Source of the DNA: Pavona decussata
Lineage: Eukaryota
Length of the DNA: 64,000 nucleotides
Direction: 5' to 3'
Assembly: GCA_977016875.1 (NCBI GenBank)
Contig: CDRNST010000012.1
Span: forward strand, 2,046,001 to 2,110,000
The position numbers and the translations under genes are program-made. Of the stretch, positions 18,248-47,500 are shown piece by piece. A model generated the notes under the pieces. That model did no database searches. It saw nothing but the letters and a program-made list of their open reading frames with translations, and had not been told where the DNA came from. The stretch's first letter is position 1, and every line of letters starts with the position of its first letter.

Positions 18248-23228
<4,981 letters not shown>

Positions 23229-27994: not shown

Positions 27995-30900
27995 TATGTA
28001 TTTAAACCAATTTATTTTCTCAAAATCACCAACTACAAGTCTGAAAATGATTAATCTCGTTTGAAACAAATTGGAGACTGAACCCGAAAAAAAATCTCTA
28101 CCAAATTATGAAAGAAAAAGCCAAACCAAAACATTTGAACGCCGAACTTTTCTTAGACGCCACTGAAATATTTCCAATGAAACAAATGAAAATAAGCAAA
28201 AAAAGAAAAAAAGGAAAGACAGAAACCCTAGCTCTATGCTGCCTGCCGGCTGCGAAAAACCAGACTTAAAAACCCTTAATAGGGAAAAAAGAGTCTGGAA
28301 ACATAGTCCTGGACCCAATGCAGAACAGCAAGGCACCCAGGCGTGCCAAAAAAAACTAGCTCAACTGAAATGGTTAACACTTTAAAAGAAAATCTCCAGG
28401 ACCACGTCATTCTTCAAACTTCTTGTCATTAGGCACCTGCAAAAACAAAGTAAGTAATGATTACCTGTGTGCCAAAAAAAAAAATTGGTAAAAGAGGAAT
28501 TCTTTCTTCAAGTTTGTTGCTGTCATTTCATAACTTTTTCATATTCTTACCTTGTGGTATTCCTTATCATTTAATAAGCCAGCGATGCCCTCCTTCTTGA
28601 ATGTCTTGACCCCTTGCTCCTGCCACTGACCTGGTGGGATTTAAATGAAACCAAACTATTCTTTTACACATGTTCACACTTCAAAGCATTGGGGATGGGG
28701 GAAGGGGCATATGGAACTCAACTAACCTTTGAGAGATGCCAGTCCGCCAGATCCTCCTTCGTGGTACTTCCGTTGCTCCACAGAACTGCCAATCTCACTC
28801 CTAACAAACAGCTTCCCTATTATCCCACCCGCCTACACCCACTAACCTAAACTCAGCCCATGAGTAGTGACACTGCTGCATACATGATCTTTACTAACAA
28901 GTCTTACTTTAAACTTCTAAAGTAGTGTGAACTGTTGCTAACATTACTTTTAACAGTTGAATCCTGAGAACTAGAATTGTGGCAACCAAATCTGCTTGTA
29001 TTAATAGAAGTTCCAAATGTAATGTAACAGTTGAAGTTAGCAAAAACTTGTAGTTGAATTCAAGTTGTCATGATTCTACTGTTTCAAAAAGGTACAAAAA
29101 CATTGATCAGGAAACACAAAGAAACAGACCACAAAATCAATGGTGTGGCTGACCTGAATCTTCTTTCACAACTGTAAAACTGTCGAGACTAGAATGAAGC
29201 ATGCACTGTTTGCACACACAATGTTTACTTTACTCGCATGTACCTTACGGTATAAAATCTACTGTTATTATCTTAAGTTCAACTAGTACTTGTTTATTAT
29301 GATTGTGTTCTATTCTCTCTTTACTTTAAAGGCTGCTTTGCCACTTTTCAAGCTGTCAAGACTAGAATGAAGTATGCACTGTTTGCACACACACACACAC
29401 ATACAATCCTAATATCTACTTCTACCTCGTGTAACTTAAGATATGCACTTTTATCTTTTGAAACAATACAACCATATTATATTACTATTATACAAAGTAA
29501 GCACACATTTTAAGACAAAATACATACTATTCATCAATTGACAAGTTTAAAACTACCACTTAATAAAAAAAAAAAAATTCGAGAAGGTAGAACCTTACTT
29601 TTGAAATCCTTTGTCTGATTGTTTGCTCATTTTGGACTGAGATGCAGTACTGGTAGTTAAATTTCTCCAGTTGACACAAACTTCATTGAGCATGGAATCG
29701 GCTGCTGAATTGACAAGAGTATGCACTATGCAACAACTTTTTAAAACAGATTAAAAAAATGAACCTGTACCTTTGCTTTTGTAGGCTCGAATTTCGAAAA
29801 GGAAAGACAGCCATCTCATGGCTTCAACCTTAATAGCTGCAAAGAGATTGATGGAACATGCAACATTTATCACAAACGAAAGAAATTCAGGATATTGAAC
29901 GCTGAAAACAAATACCTGGGTGTCTGCTATTCAACGGAACAATTTGGCTGAGTAACTGTTGGAAAACATGCCGCATTCGAACAAGAAAAAAGACAAACAG
30001 ACGAAACTAAACTCGAAGCGTGACACCATTTACAACCGGTGGAATGGATGTCGCAAGCTGTAGAGACTAAAAACATATGCCAGGTTGCTGTACATGAAAG
30101 AACACACTGTAGAATGTCTTGAACTTACTGCCGTTGCAAAAACGACTGGACCGTCTGCTGTACAATCTGCTGCAAAATTTGAAAGAATATGCACCACATC
30201 CACACAAAAATGTAGACCGCAAAAGTAACTATACCTTTGTTTCTGTCAACTCGGAATTCCAAAATGAAAAGCCAACTGAAGGTAGCTTACCAAATAAAAT
30301 TCGACGTCTGTGAATCTGTAGAGAGAGCACGCACTGTTTGCCACAAAGGCCGAAATCATACTCGGCTTGAAACTGAAAATGGAGAAATACCTTGGTACCT
30401 GGAGTTCTTCACAAGAATCTGGCTGAGAAAGTGACTGCGAGAAACATGCAATGTTTTTGACTATCAGAAGAAAATTGAAACCTTGGAACACGGCTTGAAA
30501 GTGAAAGTCATCCTAAACTGTTGAGACTGAAGAAACATATGCACTGTTTGCTGCACACAAAAGAATGTATAAAAACAGAAATAAACCTGATCGAAGAATG
30601 ACAATTCAGTATCTTTCGGAACGAACCAAACTTCATCTGCCATGGAAATTGCTGTAAAACGGACGAGAATATGCACTATTTTCACAATAAACTTTCAAAA
30701 CTGAAACTGCAGATGCAAAAATTCAATCTGTACCTTGTTGCGCGAGGAACCTAGCGTAATTCCACTTTGAATTCCAATATAAGGCTTCTCTGATTTATCC
30801 TGAGTTTGCTGAAATATCGACAAGAACAAAATGCGTCCTTTGCAACAATACGAAATGCAGCAAAAACCTGGTTGAAAAGTAGCACCATCTTCGCAGATTG

Positions 30901-31985
30901 CTTGAACTGTACATCGCCTGGTGTAAAAGCGACCAGATCACACACAACATTGCAAGAAATGATCACAGAAAATTTTGGATAGCTTTAGTTTTCATGCCAG
31001 TACCTTTTTACCTAGAATCCAGTGTTAAGAATAATTCAAACAAGAACAGAGCACAATCCCATTTCAACATGGTGCCCGCTGTAAAATGAAAAAAATATGC
31101 AATGTTTTCGCTAGCTACAAGATACCAAGCACATTTGACTGAAACCTAACCTGCACCTACTAACATTTCCAGAAGCAGAAAGAGTGATTAACATATCATA
31201 CAAAAACTGCTAGACAGTTAAACTACCACCTAATGTCAAATATTTCCTTAGATTTTTTATTGAGCAACATTTTAATACTTTAAATTCAACACCTTGAGCC
31301 TGAAAATGATCTACACCAAATTCTGACTGCAAACATATTTTAACTACCATATGTGACAAGTCATTTTTTAATTTAATAAATTTAACACAAGTTATATTAT
31401 GCCTGCCTTGCACATAGGCCTTGATAATCCACTGCAACCCGAGACACAAGAACTGTATGCCAGCTTGTGACTAAAACACAAAGAGAGACAGCAAAAACCC
31501 AACCCCCAACAAACATACCAACTCTTTTAAACATTTAACCCAAGAAAAATAAAGCATTAAATAATAACTTTGTATGTGTCAATTTATTAAGCACTGAAGG
31601 GTGCTAATGAAAATACTACCTTAACTGAAGACTCCACATTAAATTATAATTTACTAATTCTAGGTTACATGAACATAACATGATAGTAACTTAGCTATTA
31701 ATGATAAAAACATGATTGTTTATAAAATGAAGATTAGAAACGAGAAAAATGTAACAAGATAATTATTATTCATACCTGGGCGAGGAGTCATGATCACTAT
31801 AACTATACATTTGATGATAACTCTTTCTGATGTTATTTGTTCACTGAAAACTTCGAACTGCCACAAGGAACAAACTATAGACCACTTTCTGTTTAAAATG
31901 CTTACGCATGTGGAATGGTTGGTGCACTGCACGAAAAACTCATCTTTCTACTCTTGACAACTGTGAACATTGACAGAATATGCAC
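27995..31985 (-). other. Putative unannotated spliced gene made of about 15-17 very short exons (orphan protein or lncRNA)
   Basis: Regular alternation of GT donors and CAG acceptors on the minus strand. Candidate exons: 31906-31960, 31012-31078, 30868-30917, 30734-30808, 30587-30651, 30482-30517, 30391-30422, 30291(or 30235)-30307, 30129-30169, 30013-30057, 29916-29947, 29771-29836, 29599-29701, 29325-29352, 29154-29179, 28727-28800, 28551-28630, and a terminal exon from 28436. AATAAA at 28016-28011 with a U/GU-rich downstream element. Confidence 0.65.
28011..28016 (-). terminator. Polyadenylation signal AATAAA of the micro-exon gene
   Basis: TTTATT on plus; GTTTGGTCTTTATCTCTTTC lies about 20-40 nt downstream on minus. 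Confidence 0.55.
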
Positions 31986-32549
31986 ATGTTTGGACACCTT
32001 AAAGTATTTAACTAAAATTGCTCATTACAGAAAGGGCTAGTTAATTTAACATATCTTAACTGCAAGCAGTATCTCATTCAATTAATTTCAATTTTCTTAT
32101 TAGTTCAACCGCAAATATTCAATAAAAATCAATTAAGATTGTGTTAGCAGTTACAGAGTGATTGTTTAAAGATGTTAATACATAAATGTTGATCTTTGCA
32201 TTTAAATAAGCCTTAACCTCATATTAGAACTGACCTTTCAATGGATTGTAAGCAATACCAGTACTTAAGCAATGGGCGTTTAATGGACATTTGGTCAACT
32301 TTTCAAACAAATGGAAAATGTCCGTCTTGTTAGAATACTACTTGGGCAGGAATCTAAACATGAACATCTAAGGCTCAACAGCTGGAACTTCCTATATTTT
32401 CAGACTTAACTCATTCCATTATGCACTGCACTGGGCACACACGTCTACAGAGATTCCAGATCTTAGCCGCCAATAAAGGTAAGCACATTTGGAGAGCAAG
32501 AACTTTACAGGAAGCTTTTTGGACTGAACATGGTGGCTGGCTACTGCAC

Positions 32550-35500
32550 TTGCTACTGCTACATTGGAGGGAAGATGCTTGATTTCTAGGGAGGCCACTC
32601 AAAAGCAGGATGCACAATGCCAAACCTTACATGGGAAGTTAGCTCACTGAAGCTTACTGGAATGGAATTCCTACTGCATTGGTCATGTCGCGCCAACGAA
32701 AAGGTGTAACTTGAAAGAACTGTCTAAACAACTGCAGAAAAAACTGCTGCCTGCTTCCAAAATCTCACTTGAAAGATTTGTTTTGAGGAACAGGGAGGAA
32801 ATCTGCTTGAAGGAGGTTGCCCGTTGCTGAAAATACATGGAGTCTCACCCACTACTGCTTATTGGATCAACTGTCCTATGGATTACTGGCTATGGCACTT
32901 GGGAAGATGTCTGCTAAAACAGAAATGCCCACTGCTTTCTACTGCTTACTGGACTGCTACTGGTATTACAGCAAAAATGGAACTTGAAACAACTGGATTT
33001 GGATAAATATCAAGACAAATGCTGAAGGTAGGATGTCCACTGCTTTAATTGTCTTACTTGGAACTTAGCCCACTTTGATTATGATAAAACACCACTGATT
33101 CACTCCACTTAGCTTCCTGAAAAAGATTGCTTCAAAGCACACACATATGTTCTCAACATAAACGAGGAAAAAAAATGCCAAAATTAATATTGGAACTAAG
33201 CCAAATGTCGATAGTATGAACAATACTTAGACCAAATGTTGATAGTGTGAACAATACCTAAACAAAGTTGAATGAGCTTTTATGTAGCCTTCACCTTGAT
33301 GATAGTAGGCCCAGAAAGTATGAATCAATCGCCATAACATGTTGCTACTGCTACGTTGGTGAGTAGGTGCTTGATGTCTAGGGAGGCCGCTCAAAAGCAG
33401 GATGCACAATGCTGAACCTTACATGAGAAATTAACTTGTTGAAGCTTACTGGAATGAAATTCGTACTGCACTGGCCATGTCACATCAACCAAAACATGTA
33501 ACTTGAAAGAACTGTTTAAACAACTGCAGAAAAAACTGCTGCCTGCTTCCAAAATCTCACTTGAAACATTTGTTTTGAGGAACAGGGAGGAAATCTGCTT
33601 GAAGGAGGTTGCCCGTTGCTGAAAATACATGGAGTCTCACCCACTACTGCTTATTGGATCAACTGTCCTATGGATTACTGGCTATGGCACTTGGGAAGAT
33701 GTCTGCTAAAACAGAAATGCCCACTGCTTTCTACTGCTTACTGGACTGCTACTGGTATTACAGCAAAAATGGACCTTGAAACAACTGGATTTGGATAAAT
33801 GTGAAGAAAAATGCTGAAGGTAGGATGTCCACTGCGTTAATTGTCTTACTTGGAACTTAGCCCACGTCAATTATGATAAAACACCACTGATTCACTCCAC
33901 TTAGCTTCCTGAAAGAGATTGCTTCAAAGCACACACATATGTTCTCAACATAAACGAGGAAAAAAATGCCAAAATTAATATTGGAACTAAGCCAAATGTC
34001 GATAGTATGAACAATACCTAAACCAAATGTTGGTAGTGTGAACAATACCTAAACAAAGTTGGATGAGCCTTTATGTAGCCTTCACCTGGATGATAGCAGG
34101 CCCAGAAAGTATGAAGCAATCGGCATAACATGTTGCTAGTGCTACATTGGTGAGAAGGTGCTTGATTTCTAGAGATGCCGCTCAAAAGGTGGATGCACAA
34201 TGCCGAACCTTACATGAGAAGTTTGCTCGCTGAAGCTTACTGGAATGGAATTCCTACTGAACTGGCCATGTTGCGCCAACCAAAACATGTAACTTAAAAG
34301 AACTGTTTAAACAACTGCCGAGAAAAATGCTGCCTGCTTCCAAAATCTCACTTGAAAGATTTATTTTGAGGAACAGGGAGGAAATCTGCTTGAAGGAGGC
34401 TGCATGTTGCTGAAAATACATGGAGTGCCACCCACTACTGCTTATTGGATCAACTGTCCTATGGATTACTGGCTATGGCACTTGGGAAGATGTCTGCTAA
34501 AACAGAAATGCTCACTGCTTTCTACTGCTTACTGGACTGCTACTGGTATTACAGCAAAAATGGAACTTGAAACAACTGGATTTGGATAAATGTGAAGAAA
34601 AATGCTGAAGGTAGGATGTCCATTGCTTTAATTGTCTTACTTGGAACTTAGCCCACTTCAATTATGATAAAACACCACTGATTCACTCCACTAAGCGTCC
34701 TGAAAAAGATTGCTTCAAAGCACACACATATGTTCTCAACATAAACAAGGAAAAAAAATGCCAAAATTAATATTGGAACTAAGCCAAATGTCGATAGTAT
34801 GAACAATACCTAAACAAAATGTTGATAGTATGAACAATACCTAAACCAAGTTGAATGAACTTTATGAAGCTTAACTTTACTTGGATGATAGTAGGCCCAG
34901 AAAGTATGAATCAATCGGCATAACATGTTGCTACTGCTACATTGGTGAGAAGGTGCTTGATTTCTAGAGATGCCGCTCAAAAGGTGGATGCACAATGCCA
35001 AACCTTACATGAGAAGTTTGCTCGATGAAGCTTACTGGAATGGAATTCCTACTGAACTGGCCATGACGCGCCAACCAAAACATGTAACTTGAAAGAACTG
35101 TTTAAACAACTGCAGAGAAAAATGCTGCCTGCTTCCAAAATCTCACTTGAAAGATTTATTTTGAGGAACAGGGAGGAAATCTGCTTGAAGGAGGTTGCAT
35201 GTTGCTGAAAATACATGGAGTGTCACCCACTACTGCTTATTGGATCAACTGTCCTATGGATTACTGGCTATAGCACTTGGAAAGATGTCTGCTAAAACAG
35301 AAATGCCCACTGCTTTCTACTGCTTACTGGACTGCTACTGGTATTACAGCAAAAATGGAACTTGAAACAACTGGATTTGGATAAATGTGAAGAAAAATGC
35401 TGAAGGTAGGATGTCCACTGCTTTAATTGTCTTACTTGGAACTTAGCCCACTTTGATTGTGATGAAACACCACTGATTCACTCCACTAAGCTTCCTGAAA

Positions 35501-37250
35501 AAGATTGCTTCAAAGCACACACATGTTCTCAACATAAACAAGGAAAAAATGCCAAAATTAATATTGGAACTAAGCCAAATGTTGTTAGTGTGTACAATGC
35601 CTAAACCAAGTTGAAGGAGTTTCTATGTAGCTTAACGTCACCTGGATGATATAGCAGACCCAGAAAGTATGAATCTATCGCCATAACATGTTGCTACTGC
35701 TACGTTGGTGAGAAGATGCTTGATTTCTAGGGAGGCTGCTCAAAAGCAGGATGCACAATGCCAAACCTTACATGGGAAGTTAGCTCACTGAAGCTTACTG
35801 GAATAGAATTCCTACTGCACTGGCCATGTTGCACCAACCAAAACGTGTAACTTGAAAGAACTGTCTAAACAACTGCAGAGAAAAATGCTGCCTGCTTCCA
35901 AAATCTCACTTGAAAGATTTGTTTTGAGGAACAGGGAGGAAATCTGCTTGAAGGAGGTTGCATGTTGCTGGAAATACATGGAGTGTCACCCACTACTGCT
36001 TATTGGATCAACTGTCCTATGGATTACTGGCTATGGCACTTGGGAAGATGTCTGCTAAAACAGAAATGCCCACTGCTTTCTACTGCTTACTGGACTGCTA
36101 CTGGTATTACAGCAAAAATGGAACTTGAAACAACTTGATTTGGATAAATGTGAAGAAAAATGCTAAAGGTAGGATGTCCACTGCTTTAATTGTCTTACTT
36201 GGAACTTAGCCCACTTTGATTATGATAAAACACCACTGATTCACTCCACTAAGCATCCTGAAAAAGATTGCTTCAAAGCACACACATATGTTCTCCACAT
36301 AAACGAGGAAAAGGAAATTAACATTGGACCTAAGCCAAATGTCGATAGTATGAACAATACCTAAACCAAATGTTGATAGTATGAACAATACTTAAACCAA
36401 GTTGAATGAACTTTATGAAGCTTAACTTCACCTGGATGATAGTAGGCCCAAAAAGTATGAATCAATCGGCATAACATGTTGCTACTGCTACATTGGTGAG
36501 AAGGTGCTTGATTTCTAGAGATGCCACTCAAAAGGTGGATGCACAATGCCGAACCTTACATGGGAAGTTAGCTCACTGAAGCTTACTGGAATGGAATTCC
36601 TACTGAACTGGCCATGACGCTCCACCCAAAACATGTAACTTGAAAGAACTGTTTAAACAACTGCAGAGAAAAATGCTGCCTGCTTCCAAAATCTCACTTG
36701 AAACATTTGTTTTGAGGAACAGGGAGGAAATCTGCTTGAAGGAGGTTGCATGTTGCTGAAAATACATGGAGTGTCACCCACTACTGCTTATTGGATCAAC
36801 TGTCCTATGGATTACTGGCTATGGCACTTGGAAAGATGTCTGCTAAAACAGAAATGCCCACTGCTTTCTACTGCTTACTGGACTGCTACTGGTATTACAG
36901 CAAAAATGGAACTTGAAACAACTTGATTTGGATAAATGTGAAGAAAAATGCTGAAGGTAGGATGTCCACTGCTTTAATTGTCTTACTTGGAACTTAGCCC
37001 ACTTTGATTATGATAAAACACCACTGATTCACTCCACTAAGTTTCCTGAAAAAGATTGCTTCAAGGCACACACACATGTTCTCAACATAAACAAAGGAAA
37101 AAAATGCTAAAAAACTTAAAATTGAAACTAAGCCAAACATTGTTAACTAGTATGAATAATGCCAAAACCAAGTTGAATAAACTCTTATGTAGCTACTTCA
37201 CCTGGATGATCTAGTAGACCCAGACAAGTATGAACCAATTGCCATAACAC
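32550..37250. repeat. Tandem array of about six ~790-bp units
   Basis: Anchor GTTGCTG(A/G)AAATACATGGAG at 32823, 33615, 34406, 35201, 35964 and 36752 (periods 792, 791, 795, 763, 788). High inter-unit identity; most periods are not multiples of 3. Confidence 0.97.
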
Positions 37251-40200
37251 TTTTGAAGGAGAAATACGGGAAGACCTTGAAAGGGATTGGACGACAGAGG
37301 TCACATGTCCCCACCAACTTGATACTGATTACGATTTGTGCTAGGAATCCCCAGGAAATTGAGACTTTTCGCCAAGAACCACAATCAGCTAGGGTTAACT
37401 GGTCAAGAAGGATGAATGGATGTGCTTTCCAAAACTTTCACTTACAGGGAAGTCCAACTGCCTTCATTCCTATCCACTGCACAAGCTAACAAGGCAATGC
37501 TGCCCCAACAAACTGGAACTTAGTTGGATGGTCAGCGGAAGGACTTTAGATCGCTTACTGGGGGTGGACATCCAACCACATCCCCTGCTACTGACACTTT
37601 TGCTTATTTGGACATAAATGGAGCTTTTAGGAAATGCCAACTGATGTATCTTACTTGATTTTGCACAATCATTAGGATCCCCATGTGCACCATTGCTTCA
37701 CTGCGTTTTCCTGAAAAATACTGCTTACAAGTATATGTCCTAAACCTAAGAAAGTAGTTCTCTGCTTCCATGCTGTACCAAATGAATAGATGAACTTGCT
37801 AAATTCAACATCCATCAGAGAATTCACCACTCTTACTACGAACTGCACACATTGAACACATCTACGCCATTGAAGGACACAAAAACACACTGGAACATGA
37901 ACTATAAACACTTTCAGGAGTAAGTTCTCTTTGGAGTGCTTACCAGATTGGACTTTTCTCTGCACTGGCTAATACTACAGCAACCATGGACATAAAAAGA
38001 GCAGTCTTGCAGATCAACAGAAAGCTTCACACTTGCAATTGCTGAACCTTAACTGGAATTTAACACTTTGCTGTTCATAAATTCCCATTTGTCTTCCTGC
38101 AAAAAACTGTTGCAAAGCACACATACATGTTCCAAACCTGACCAATAATGCCAATAGATATCACTTTGTGAACGAAACTTTTATAAATCCTTTGCCCAGA
38201 AAAATGGATGATTTGAGTTACCTTGTGTTGGTGATTGATGCATGTTGGGTGCTCCATAGTTTTAGCCAACTTTGGTAATTTGAAAAAGTTTATAGGGATG
38301 AGCTTGTCCAAAATTTGACCAACGATTGCAATTCAGATTTGATTTAGTGAAAGAATGTTCCAGGAATAAATTGTAACTTTGAGGAGGGCTATCATTTAGG
38401 CCATGTATCAGCAAAACTGAGGGAGTTTTGGTCATCTTCAGAATTTCCACCATGCAACACAGTCCAAAATAGGTAGCTTAAAGAAATGACAACACTTGCT
38501 CTGGAACCAAACAATGATCACTGAAGGTAGCGGGACTTTTGGTTTTATGGTGTTTACTGTCACTTTGGTACCAAAGGAACTTGAAAGCGCTGCTGTGGCA
38601 AAATCAAGCAGAAAAGAGTGCACAAACGAGGACGCTGTATAGCACTTGACATTAAGTGACCTACTGCTCAATGAACTTGCTTTGGTAACAATGAAACTTG
38701 CCAACCATGCAGGCATGTGAAGGCAAAATGCGGGAAGCTGACCAGCCAATGAAACTTTACACGGATGGAATTAAGCAGGTTTTGGCCCCAATTAATTGCT
38801 GCCGTTATTTCCCTGAAAAAAAAAGAACTGCTCCAACGCACACATTTTCCTAACACAGACAAGCTGCTAAAACCATAGCATTGTCAAAACAAAACCGAAT
38901 TTTAAGGCGACAGGTAAAATTGCTGCAAATAAATGTACAAAAAATCTTGTACAAGATGACTACAGTCAATTACCTTAGGTTACATGTGGTGGGATAGGCC
39001 TACACTGTAGATACTCCACGATGCTTGCTCGGTTGACAAAGATTTATATGACCAGACAAAGCATGCGCTAGCACTGGAGCTGAACGTCATTTCAATCTCT
39101 GCACGCTAGGGTGGGAGACCAAGAACTGCTTGGAACATCACTGGATCAAGATCCGCCTGGTTTTGGATTCCCTCCAAATATAATAAGATTTTTTTCCGAT
39201 TCATCTGAAAAAAGTTTCAAAACAAGCACACATTTTCCGACAAAAAAGGAATATGGCATTACCTCGGGAGCAACGAAAGAAGTCAGCGAGAGTGAATGGC
39301 TTGTCATGATGTGCTTCTGAATAAGATTGGACATACATCCTTCAAGAAAATATAGGCATGGAGAGACTGACTTTCAGAGGTTGAAACAGGAACCGTCTGT
39401 TTTGGATTTCAGTTCTCAATTTGACACAGGATGTTTCCACGACACTTTGGTCACAAGCCTGTCTTCCACAGTCCTACTGTACTGTAAAACTGTCTCGTTC
39501 ATGCTGCAAGAGGGCAAAAATACCACACGCATATCCCAAACAAATTACCAGCATTGGCAACCATTTACATGCATGAAAAAAAGAACAAAAGCTTTGGAAA
39601 ACCTTGCAAAAATTTATCTGGCATTTACCTTTTTTGCAAACGCAAAACGATACATCACCGAGATCCATAGATGACTCTTTTTCCCTTGAATTTGCAGTGC
39701 CTTCTTGCTTTATGAACTGAAAAAGCTTCAGAGCATGCACACTTTGGGAAAGACAACCAAAGAGAATTTGGACACAGGACCACATTCTTACTTGCCATTT
39801 CAGTACACTAGAGTCCATTCTGTTAACAGCTTCAGAGAAATTTCATACAGTTTCTTTTTTCATAGGTTATTAGTGAGAGCCAAAAAGTTGATCCCCTTGC
39901 TACAGAATCTTCCGTCAAATGTATGGAAATCAGAATCTTCACTACATCTCTCTGTTCTTGACCTTTACATCAGGATGCTAATCTTTGGAACAGAAACAGG
40001 AAACAAAGCCCCAAATGCATACCTTACAATGTTTTGTCGCAGTCGTTGTCAGTAGCGTGGAGAATGAACCAGGAATGATCAGAATTATGTTGATTGAACC
40101 GTTTGGGGAATGGCTGGCCAACTTAACTGGGTTTTCTACTTTCGTTGCACAGTTTTTGATGGACAATAAACTCCTGTAATTTCTACCAGTTTGCATATGG

Positions 40201-44590: not shown

Positions 44591-47500
44591 TCATATTTCC
44601 TTCATCATCCAAAATGAGCCTGTAAGAACAGTCGTGCCAGGATGTGAATTTGGTAGCTGTTGCAAAGAAGGGGGAGTGGGTGGGGGTGGAGGGGGAGGTG
44701 GGGGTGGGGCAAGAGTAGCTGTTTTTTGTGGAAGTGATGATGACGATGATGACAGTGATGATGAAGATTGCAGGCTGTTGGTTAAACATGAATTCTGTTT
44801 ATTAGCGCCTAGAATATCAGGGTTTATTCCACATTTATGAAGACTTGTTTCAGAATCTTGCACACTCATACTGTCATTTTTCACCACAGACTTCTGAACC
44901 TTGCAGTCATCATCCTGCATGTCATGCTCATGTTCCATTTCTAGTTCGCATTCTTGACCTCTTAATAATGCAAGCTGCAACAAAAGTTTGTCACAAAAAA
45001 ATCAGCAACTTGGACAAAGTAAAAAAGAAAACATACTCTGAGATGCCTAAATTTCTTGTTAATACCCACTACTCCTCAAGAAGGAAGGGCTTATTAGAGA
45101 GGGGGGCTTGTTTTTCATTATGAGTTTTGAACAAAACTTAAAATTATTGGCTTTTCCACAACTTCATGATACACCGAAATGAAACATAGCACTGATGGAT
45201 TGTCAGTTTCCTTAATCTTATGAAAAGTGATTAAAATAATATTCATTTGGTAATTCTTCCTGTTTTTGTAGCTATTTGGCTTTCAATGTTACACATTTCA
45301 GATGTACCTATTTAAGGGTGATGCCTTCTAATACGGTGGACAGGTATTTTTGCACAGTTTAATTACTATGTGGGAAACATAGATCTTACAATAGCAAGGT
45401 CTACTGGAATCCAAAGTGAAAATTTTATAGCTTCAGTAATATTGAAAATTGCATGGCTATCCCTAATAATATTTTCATATTCTTGGATTCCAATAACCCT
45501 TGCAAAGATCCCATAAGCTGTCCAAAAAGACCTTTGTGTCAGTAGGCACCATTCTGAAACCTGAGTTTCTTGGACTGTCCAGAGATGNNNNNNNNNNNNN
45601 NNNNNNNNNNNNNNNNNNNNNNNNNNNNNNNNNNNNNNNNNNNNNNNNNNNNNNNNNNNNNNNNNNNNNNNNNNNNNNNNNNNNNNNNNNNNNNNNNNNN
45701 NNNNNNNNNNNNNNNNNNNNNNNNNACAAAAGGAAGAACTGTCCTTACTCTACATCTAATAATTATTGGATTTATGTCAGTTTGCTAAGATTTTAACATT
45801 TCGACATTATTAATTCTTTGTCACTACATGCCGCGATTAGCTGTATTGTATAAATCAGTAACATAACTTACTTGAGAGGAAGTAAAGAGACTTGAGCTGG
45901 CCTTGACTGGCGAGACTTGAGTACAGTACTGATAACCCAGATGTTTGTAAAATTCACACTTATCGGTTGTTGAGAGGTAGATGGCTGTACAGCCTAACCT
46001 ATAATGACAACAGGAAATTGACAAAATTCATGGCAACACAACGGGAAGGGCTAAGGCTACACCCTCATAAAATCTAGCATCTAATACAAAGCTGCAGTTG
46101 ATTATGTAACAATAATATTAACCCACATCTAACAAAATCCCAATTTTGGTCAGACAAGATATCTGAGGAATTGTAACAAAACACCATTGATCATCACTTC
46201 ATAACTGAAGAGACAAAAAAACATTCAAGAATATATATATTACCTTAAATTATAGTACCAACTGTTAAATTAATATTCACAATATGCGGTACTTAATGGT
46301 AAAGCTCATCAACCCTTTAATGGTCTGGGTGATCCTCAAACTATTAATGACCACATAATTCATCAGGGAATGACAGCATGGCACTTTTGCAACAGTGTTG
46401 TTGCTTTCATTACTTTATGGATTGTTGGCTGATTTCAGAAGTCTTGTGATTGCTGTTTTGGTTGAGCATGACCAAATGCCTACGATAAACAACCTTGAGA
46501 GAAATCAGGTAAACCTAAAACCAAACTCATCCCAGTTGGCTTAGTTAAAAATTCCCAGAACACTGCCTGATATTAATAAGCAAATCATGAAGGTCAAATC
46601 ATGGCCAGTGAACCATGTTTGAAAACCTGGTCGACTCAATGAACAGAAGTGAAATTGGCTTGAATATTACAGACAGTTACATAATCAAAATAACAACACT
46701 TTTTCAACACTTTCATTATTATTTTCAACAAATATATAAAGACAATTAACCGCATATAGCTTGCTGCAATACTACAGTTTGTTAATTAGGGACTAATCTA
46801 ACTTATCAGTATGGAGATCTAAATCGTAAAATCATATTAAAATAGTATTAAGATGCTATACTAATTACATAACATAGAGCCATAAATCCTAATCACTGAT
46901 CCTAATCCTAAATCCATTAAGAAACTCACTGAGAAGCATATGATTCTGTCAGCTGCATGAGCTTTTTTCCAAGTCCACATCCTCTTCTTGCCTTTTCTAT
47001 AAGAACTTGATGAGGATAACAGAAATATCAAATAATATAATACTTTAAATATTTTAATAAATAAATAATGTTTGAGTCACTTACTCATAATGGATTGACT
47101 TTCACAGCACAATAATTTTTATGGTTCTAATTCTACAACATTTTTTATCTAAAGGCTACATTTTAAGAGTGATCCATTTTCCTTGAAATTAGTCCCTCAG
47201 GCATAATATTTTTGTTGTGGTCTTAATTTTTCTTTTGGTTTAAAAATTCTCAAACCAGTTTGATTTTCATTTCCCTTTTCTTGGATCCTGGTAATGAATA
47301 TTGCATAAAGGAAAATAAAACTTAAACTGGTTTGAAAATTGTAAAACCGAAAATAAAATAAATTATGTGCCCTGAAAACTAACAGCCATACAAAATAACC
47401 TCGTAACACCTTTAGATTCTCTGAGAAAAAACAGTTGACCTACCCCCCCTCCCCTCCCCTCCCCCTCAGGGCACCTCTCCTTGATCTGCCACAGATAATC

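Follow-up and report, generated by a model that had tools for sequence, protein, structure and literature searches.

A predicted micro-exon chain

The window, i.e., the whole 64,000-nucleotide stretch of Pavona decussata DNA analyzed here (assembly GCA_977016875.1, contig CDRNST010000012.1, positions 2,046,001 to 2,110,000 of the forward strand), carries on its minus strand what appears to be a chain of 15 micro-exons, 13 of which follow a copy of a ~42-nucleotide (nt) intron-end module. Whole-window coordinates are used throughout, and the chain is read on the minus strand between 32,300 and 28,900. The locus is single copy in the 602-Mb assembly.

The geometry of the repeated motif is exact. 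An initial annotation of the window had paired 14 plus-strand ATGC motifs (ACGC at 30329) with CTG triplets, the complements of minus-strand CAG acceptors, at a distance of 18–23 nt; all 14 motif positions, all 14 acceptor positions and the spacing are reproduced. A CTG lies 18–23 nt from ATGC in 14 of 22 instances inside 29,150–31,990 vs. 36 of 277 in the remaining window sequence (Fisher p = 2.8e-7). With up to two mismatches allowed, the 14-mer AAACAGTGCATAYT has nine minus-strand matches, every one within 29,198–31,107; with up to three, the window holds 35 matches vs. 22.9 ± 4.7 in shuffled sequence.

Exon models were built with the CAG acceptors as anchors and the first good donors taken, yielding 15 exon-like units, E1–E14 and E2b. 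The predicted exons span 17–103 nt, eight of them at most 36 nt long, and only four of the 15 lengths (75, 36, 24 and 66 nt) are multiples of three. Eleven of the 14 introns are 59–121 nt long and the remaining three measure 145, 246 and 827 nt, close to the ~17–105-nt exons and ~55–120-nt introns estimated earlier. The predicted units, all on the minus strand, are as follows:

E1: module 32002–31961, exon 31960–31906 (55 nt); donor GTAAGC, profile E-value 2.7e-4, followed by the 827-nt intron
E2: module 31120–31079, exon 31078–31012 (67 nt); an ATG opens a weakly signal-like hydrophobic stretch
E2b: span 30959–30868, exon 30917–30868 (50 nt); degenerate module TGCAAT...GTGTGTG; absent from the initial list
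E3: span 30850–30734, exon 30808–30734 (75 nt); degenerate module (CGCAT), in-frame TAA
E4: module 30693–30652, exon 30651–30587 (65 nt); paralogue of E8 and E12
E5: module 30561–30518 with an inner AG, exon 30517–30482 (36 nt); paralogue of E9, E13 and E14
E6: module 30468–30423, exon 30422–30399 (24 nt) or to 30391 (32 nt, the E10-homologous form)
E7: module 30351–30308 (GCGT variant), exon 30307–30291 (17 nt) or to 30235 (73 nt, the E11-homologous form)
E8: module 30211–30170, exon 30169–30129 (41 nt); donor GTAAGT
E9: module 30099–30058, exon 30057–30027 (31 nt); an alternative donor gives 45 nt
E10: module 29990–29948 (GGCATG), exon 29947–29916 (32 nt)
E11: module 29880–29837 (TGCATG), exon 29836–29771 (66 nt)
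E12: module 29743–29702, exon 29701–29599 (103 nt)
E13: module 29396–29353, preceded by a (TG)n run, exon 29352–29325 (28 nt)
E14: module 29223–29180 (39/41 identical to the E13 module), exon 29179–29154 (26 nt)

Donor-like signals are enriched on one strand only. In the locus, the minus strand holds 18 copies of AGGT and the plus strand three, with 8.0 ± 2.7 in dinucleotide shuffles, and AGGT[AT] is found 17 times vs. 4.6 ± 2.0 in shuffles. Predicted exons have 41.5% GC and 29% T, predicted introns 35% GC and 39% T. The minus-only AGGT enrichment and the composition contrast argue for exon-intron syntax rather than a neutral satellite or a cluster of sites acting at the DNA level, and support the earlier proposal of a minus-strand micro-exon chain that open reading frame lists would miss.

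The ~42-nt intron-end module

Alignment of the intron ends reveals a conserved block of ~42 nt, wider than TGCAT alone, upstream of 13 of the 15 predicted exons. Its parts follow in a constant order: a U/GU-rich run, (C)AAACAG, UGCAU(A/G), a pyrimidine tract, often an inner AG, and CAG. GCAT is invariant across the 13 aligned modules (E7 has a GCGT variant) and the block is degenerate in E2b and E3; UGC or GGC-AU lies ~24 nt upstream of every acceptor. The bases around the core vary, with TGCATG in E6, E11 and E14, GCATG in E10, GCATA in eight units and GCGTG in one. The GU-rich head of the E13 module coincides with a (TG)10 microsatellite (29,386–29,405, minus strand), an expansion which implies that this part of the module tolerates changes in length.

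The core occupies the place of a branch point but, as noted at the outset, GCAT does not fit the yUnAy consensus. Sites that do resemble it (UUCAU, UCAA) lie just 3' of UGCAU, a few bases from the inner AG. Seven units have this inner AG 8–12 nt before the chosen CAG, bearing out an earlier remark on several units, and one further unit has it 3 nt before the CAG. We infer that the inner AG is bypassed because the branch-like site is only a few bases away.

Duplication history and unequal conservation

Self-comparison aligns 30,565–30,164 with 30,102–29,696 over 433 nt (61% identity, E-value 9e-15), which defines a four-exon super-unit of ~465 bp in which E5–E8 correspond to E9–E12:

29696..30565, minus strand: super-unit of four exons and ~465 bp in two copies, E5–E8 and E9–E12, from self-alignment

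E4, E8 and E12 are equivalent units, as are E5, E9 and E13. By this homology, the ancestral E6 is 32 nt and the ancestral E7 73 nt long, and their 24- and 17-nt forms use derived inner donors. The lengths of paralogous exons differ by non-multiples of three (36/31, 73/66 and 41/103 nt).

A second, smaller duplication lies at the 3' end. The E13 and E14 modules are identical at 39 of 41 positions (95%), as compared to 38 of 55 for flanks and exon (Fisher p = 0.0015); the flanks are 60–74% identical. On the sequence evidence, E13/E14 is a younger copy within a nested tandem duplication.

Conservation is unequal across unit types. Modules from differing types align with a mean local score of 17.7 vs. 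a null of 11.05, whereas the exons are unalignable (11.4 vs. 10.6). Only the module is recognizable between differing unit types; neither the exon nor the 5' part of the intron is. The initial description of a conserved intron end joined to a variable exon holds for comparisons across types and for the E13/E14 pair; the contrast is milder at equivalent places of the super-repeat, where exons are still ~60–67% alike.

Two other classes of element were considered and rejected. A minisatellite, which the initial annotation had named in its decaying form as an alternative to micro-exons, does not match the locus: Tandem Repeats Finder (TRF) reports only a (CA)10 run there, and decay is non-uniform. 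A mirtron or intronic microRNA cluster is likewise not seen, as 13 introns, when folded, give z-scores of −0.95 to +1.38 and no end-to-end hairpin. In Rfam, nothing matches the locus at the gathering threshold or at E ≤ 1.

The module is private to the locus

The bare 14-mer AAACAGTGCATAYT occurs 41 times in the genome vs. 19 times for a reversed control; of 39 other genomic sites inspected, none shows a correctly spaced pyrimidine tract and CAG. The extended block has three genome matches, all in the locus. A sequence-only profile built from 13 modules, with the best 150 candidates in the genome scored, places the locus alone at the top, and its other matches are isolated, with E-values above 0.4. 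TGCAT and GCATG show flat positional profiles upstream of 1139 acceptor-like sites in another 264 kb of sequence, and the E13/E14 block has no match in a metagenome scan.

The wider dedicated splicing code proposed in the initial annotation finds no support: the module is absent elsewhere in the 602-Mb genome and TGCAT has no positional peak in the 264 kb. Matches restricted to one locus argue against a species-wide intron signal, a transposon, or a code common to other genes. A species-wide intron or branch-point-like signal was rejected on the other 14-mer copies, which lack acceptor context, and on the flat TGCAT profile; a transposon or introner was rejected since the extended block and the top profile matches occur only here and the locus is single copy.

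In the sampled loci L045–L064, CTRAY spikes ~50 nt before acceptor-like sites (17.9 vs. ~2 per 1000). A repeat family in these 200 kb is the most likely source of the spike.

Coding potential and predicted downstream exons

The spliced chain was assessed by a reading-frame walk alone, and homology searches used single exons or contiguous pieces. With the 24-nt form of E6 and the 17-nt form of E7, the walk finds a 530-nt stop-free path that begins just after the E3 TAA and extends through E14, a length matched in 6 of 5000 within-exon shuffles (best of eight model variants). The long open frame requires the derived inner donors of E6 and E7. Upstream of it, the E2 ATG opens a hydrophobic stretch of 19 residues, D and E among them, after which the frame meets the TAA in E3. 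Three further predicted exons, codon-biased, without the module and in frame with E14, lie downstream:

X1: 28800–28727, minus strand
X2: 28630–28551, minus strand
X3: 28436–28407, minus strand, ending with TGA

The X1–X3 region (28,407–28,880, minus strand) encodes a glycine- and lysine-rich C-terminus ending KKFEE-stop, and AATAAA is found near 28,012; its pieces match nothing in Pfam or the PDB. The 2-nt tail of E14 and the 1-nt lead of X1 together keep the 530-nt frame. X1 would need an upstream coding exon because an in-frame TAG and no ATG lie upstream of it. X1–X3 could be the 3' terminus of the micro-exon gene, or else a separate ~72-residue protein. The rival start for the latter, an ATG near 28,877, requires a 46-nt G-rich intron vs. 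the 59-nt minimum among the 14 modelled introns.

The codon-usage score is +0.25 per codon for X1–X3 and −0.099 for the chain, with a genomic null of −0.095 ± 0.057; the power of this test is low, with known coding open reading frames scoring −0.04 to +0.07. By eye, the differences between E4 and E12 are not concentrated at third positions. Against 1.8 billion representatives, the 33-residue E12 peptide returns one spurious repeat match only; six exon pieces have no match in Pfam, X2 has none in the PDB, and no homologue candidate was found for a 73-residue contiguous frame that runs through E4, the intron and E5. The odds that the chain is translated appear roughly even.

Comparison with known systems

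The sequence pattern is real and has solid statistical backing; it is most likely a duplicated micro-exon chain with an acceptor module of its own, a variation on two known themes, the tandem duplication of exons and the conservation of intron ends upstream of micro-exons. In schistosome micro-exon genes (MEGs), a family that appears to be restricted to platyhelminths, very small, symmetrical exons make up most of the coding region, so that skipping keeps the frame, and all products have a signal peptide (PMC4350168). The present chain resembles MEGs in its many tiny exons that evade open reading frame detection, a possible hydrophobic leader exon, fast exon divergence and internal duplication. 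However, 11 of the 15 exon lengths cannot be divided by three, the introns are very short, and the feature that marks this locus, a repeated intron-end module, is not a described MEG feature. The analogy to MEGs drawn in the initial annotation therefore breaks down at the exon lengths, of which only four of 15 would preserve the frame.

Micro-exons that respond to SRRM4 have a UGC between the pyrimidine tract and the AG (10.1101/2024.09.17.613571). Tiny exons and an unusually conserved upstream intron end with UGC near the 3' splice site are features of both systems, but in the SRRM4/eMIC case conservation is among orthologues of many genes, whereas here a ~42-nt unit is conserved among the paralogous units of one gene. 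Furthermore, the module is absent from the rest of the genome and its UGC lies 5' of the tract, a placement that speaks against the SRRM4/eMIC signal proposed earlier.

Upstream of the exon, the GCAU core close to the branch region and the GUGUG run beside it recall the sites of RBFOX and SUP-12/RBM24. An RBFOX element at such a position represses the downstream exon, as in CT/CGRP exon 4 and egl-15 exon 5B. Yet GCAUG is present in just four of the 15 units and most units have GCAUA; we know of no RBFOX motif of this form. As an explanation for the units as a class, the RBFOX element that had been recognized in the motif was rejected: UGCAUG is exact in only three units and GCAUG occurs in four, with GCAUA in eight.

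As in Dscam docking/selector arrays and protocadherins, a short conserved element precedes each tandem exon and constant exons follow. Unlike in these systems, there is no same-strand complementary docking sequence, and the exons are unequal in length and not interchangeable; nor are they alternative first exons, because each has both an acceptor and a donor. A docking/selector array was rejected after a search of the transcribed strand, in or near the locus, gave no reverse-complement match at up to three mismatches. Finally, short exons multiplied together with their introns in nested super-repeats are found in the titin PEVK region. Titin PEVK exons retain their length, phase and peptide motif, whereas in the present chain the acceptor module is the only part preserved and the exons vary in both length and phase.

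A model of the chain and its alternatives

With middling confidence, we propose that the locus is the repetitive middle of a single-copy gene, comprising about 15 duplicated micro-exons, in which the module has been selected as a private 3' splice-site and enhancer cassette. The chain would have arisen as a unit consisting of an intron 3' end and an exon underwent nested tandem duplication; selection, possibly aided by short-tract gene conversion, would preserve the module as exon sequence and length drift. The branch A, likely of the UUCAU or UCAA type, would sit in the module's pyrimidine tract, with the inner AG too near for use. The module would most likely serve as a gene-private 3' splice site combined with an intronic enhancer, letting the spliceosome pair close sites across 60–120-nt introns (intron definition), which in turn would promote inclusion of exons too small to be defined alone. 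The units are probably all served together by a sequence-specific factor that binds UGCAU and the GU run. If the chain is transcribed and its predicted junctions are used, it would most likely continue into X1–X3 (28,800–28,407).

Several observations weigh against this model. Some donors are weak (GTTTTT, GTTTAT, GTTTCA, GTGTCA), and the motif itself served in part to ascertain the units. Between E5–E8 and E9–E12, the advantage of the module over the rest is only moderate: it is 75% identical vs. 67–80% elsewhere when gaps are ignored; with gaps counted, the values are 68% vs. 53–54%. In the E13/E14 pair, gene conversion could mimic selection.

Part of this evidence would be met by the same chain with an ordinary branch site, tract and AG, in which likeness stems from descent and gene conversion and the TGCAT core is a passenger that binds no special factor. 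The 67–80% identity of every column class between E5–E8 and E9–E12 is what such a history would leave, and a trans-acting code is not needed because the motif is unused elsewhere in the genome. We nevertheless regard a passenger core as doubtful: GCAT is invariant in 13 otherwise dissimilar units (partly ascertained by the motif), it misfits the branch consensus yUnAy, the block alone, and not the exon or the 5' part of the intron, is recognizable across unit types, and in E13/E14 it has 2 of 41 positions changed vs. 26–40% divergence of the flanks. At the other extreme, a known factor could use the core to co-regulate and combinatorially skip the micro-exons in MEG-like variants, either RBFOX through UGCAUG or SRRM4/eMIC through UGC. 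UGC or GGC-AU ~24 nt before each acceptor, eight exons of at most 36 nt, and the exact TGCATG in E6, E11 and E14 would suit this reading, as would the GU run adjoining UGCAU; C. elegans egl-15 has a cooperative Fox-1/SUP-12 element in which a GU run lies beside UGCAU. But most skips would shift the frame, given four of 15 lengths in multiples of three; GCAUA, found in eight units, is no RBFOX site; UGC precedes the pyrimidine tract and does not fall between tract and AG; and the element has no genome-wide use. Regulation of this kind is unlikely. A six-frame genome search for Fox-1_C and a genome search for SRRM_C found no match, with the controls equally silent. Less probable still is a locus devoid of exons, either a decaying tandem DNA repeat or a homotypic cluster of transcription-factor sites with a forkhead-like plus-strand TGTTTGC. 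The ~110–140-bp unit spacing and exact TGTTTGC in four units (E5, E7, E13 and E14) are compatible with it, but TRF sees no array, just the (CA)10 run, donor- and acceptor-like signals are strand-specific and enriched, exons and introns contrast in composition, GCAT and CAG are better conserved than the forkhead-like part, and between unrelated unit types similarity ends at the CAG.

A different question is whether the chain is coding. It may, with an appreciable though lesser probability, be a non-coding leader or a separate long non-coding RNA in which splicing as such, or the intron ends once excised (for example as 13 AGUGCAU decoys for an RNA-binding protein), is what matters, with X1–X3 starting at their own ATG near 28877. 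The chain's codon score equals the genomic null as compared to +0.25 for X1–X3, paralogous exons are 36/31, 73/66 and 41/103 nt long, E3 has an in-frame TAA, the long frame depends on the derived E6/E7 donors, and the exon peptides have no homologue in the searches made. Against this stand the 530-nt stop-free path (6/5000 shuffles), which is in frame with X1, the 46-nt G-rich intron that the 28877 start needs, shorter than the 59-nt minimum modelled, and the low power of the codon test.

The proposed private cassette could also be carried further. Each copy of a portable cassette would make the sequence that follows it a micro-exon, and a dedicated GUGUG...UGCAU binder would splice the chain as a block; alternatively, the excised intron ends would be the product, supplying 13 copies of one protein-binding site per transcript. 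We consider either form improbable. If the portable cassette were true, the gene would grow by copying splice modules and not coding sequence.

Micro-exons are hard for the spliceosome to see, and the origin of new ones is an open question. The locus offers 13 natural replicates in one gene, in which the same acceptor module precedes exon sequences that are unrelated and 17–103 nt long. If the junctions are real, it would be a test bed for the intron-end sequences sufficient to define a micro-exon, for the creation of exon chains by tandem duplication, and for whether exon content matters; if RNA gives no support, it would be a curiosity of duplication history.

Surroundings of the chain

One stretch farther upstream on the minus strand resembles an intron of the chain:

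39718..39791, minus strand: possible upstream intron of the same transcription unit, 74 nt, with a GTAAGA donor and GTGTGCATGCT ~24 nt before the CAG (profile E-value 0.24, weak)

This stretch follows a short ATGGCAAG exon end and precedes an 88-nt exon-like stretch ending AAAAG|GTAAAT. It may mark the start of the chain's transcription unit. Directly upstream of E1 on the minus strand, 32,497–37,000 holds six head-to-tail copies of a ~790-bp repeat, with spacings of 792, 791, 795, 763 and 788, which share 78–97% identity in comparisons of 300-nt stretches. A gene start near 39.8 kb would place this array within one of the gene's introns.

A run of 138 Ns at 45,588–45,725 is outside the micro-exon chain. 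Two Rfam tRNA matches are on the minus strand, at 18,467–18,540 (50.7 bits) and 138–211 (32.2 bits); ARAGORN calls only the 18,467–18,540 tRNA, with an odd two-base reading of the anticodon loop.

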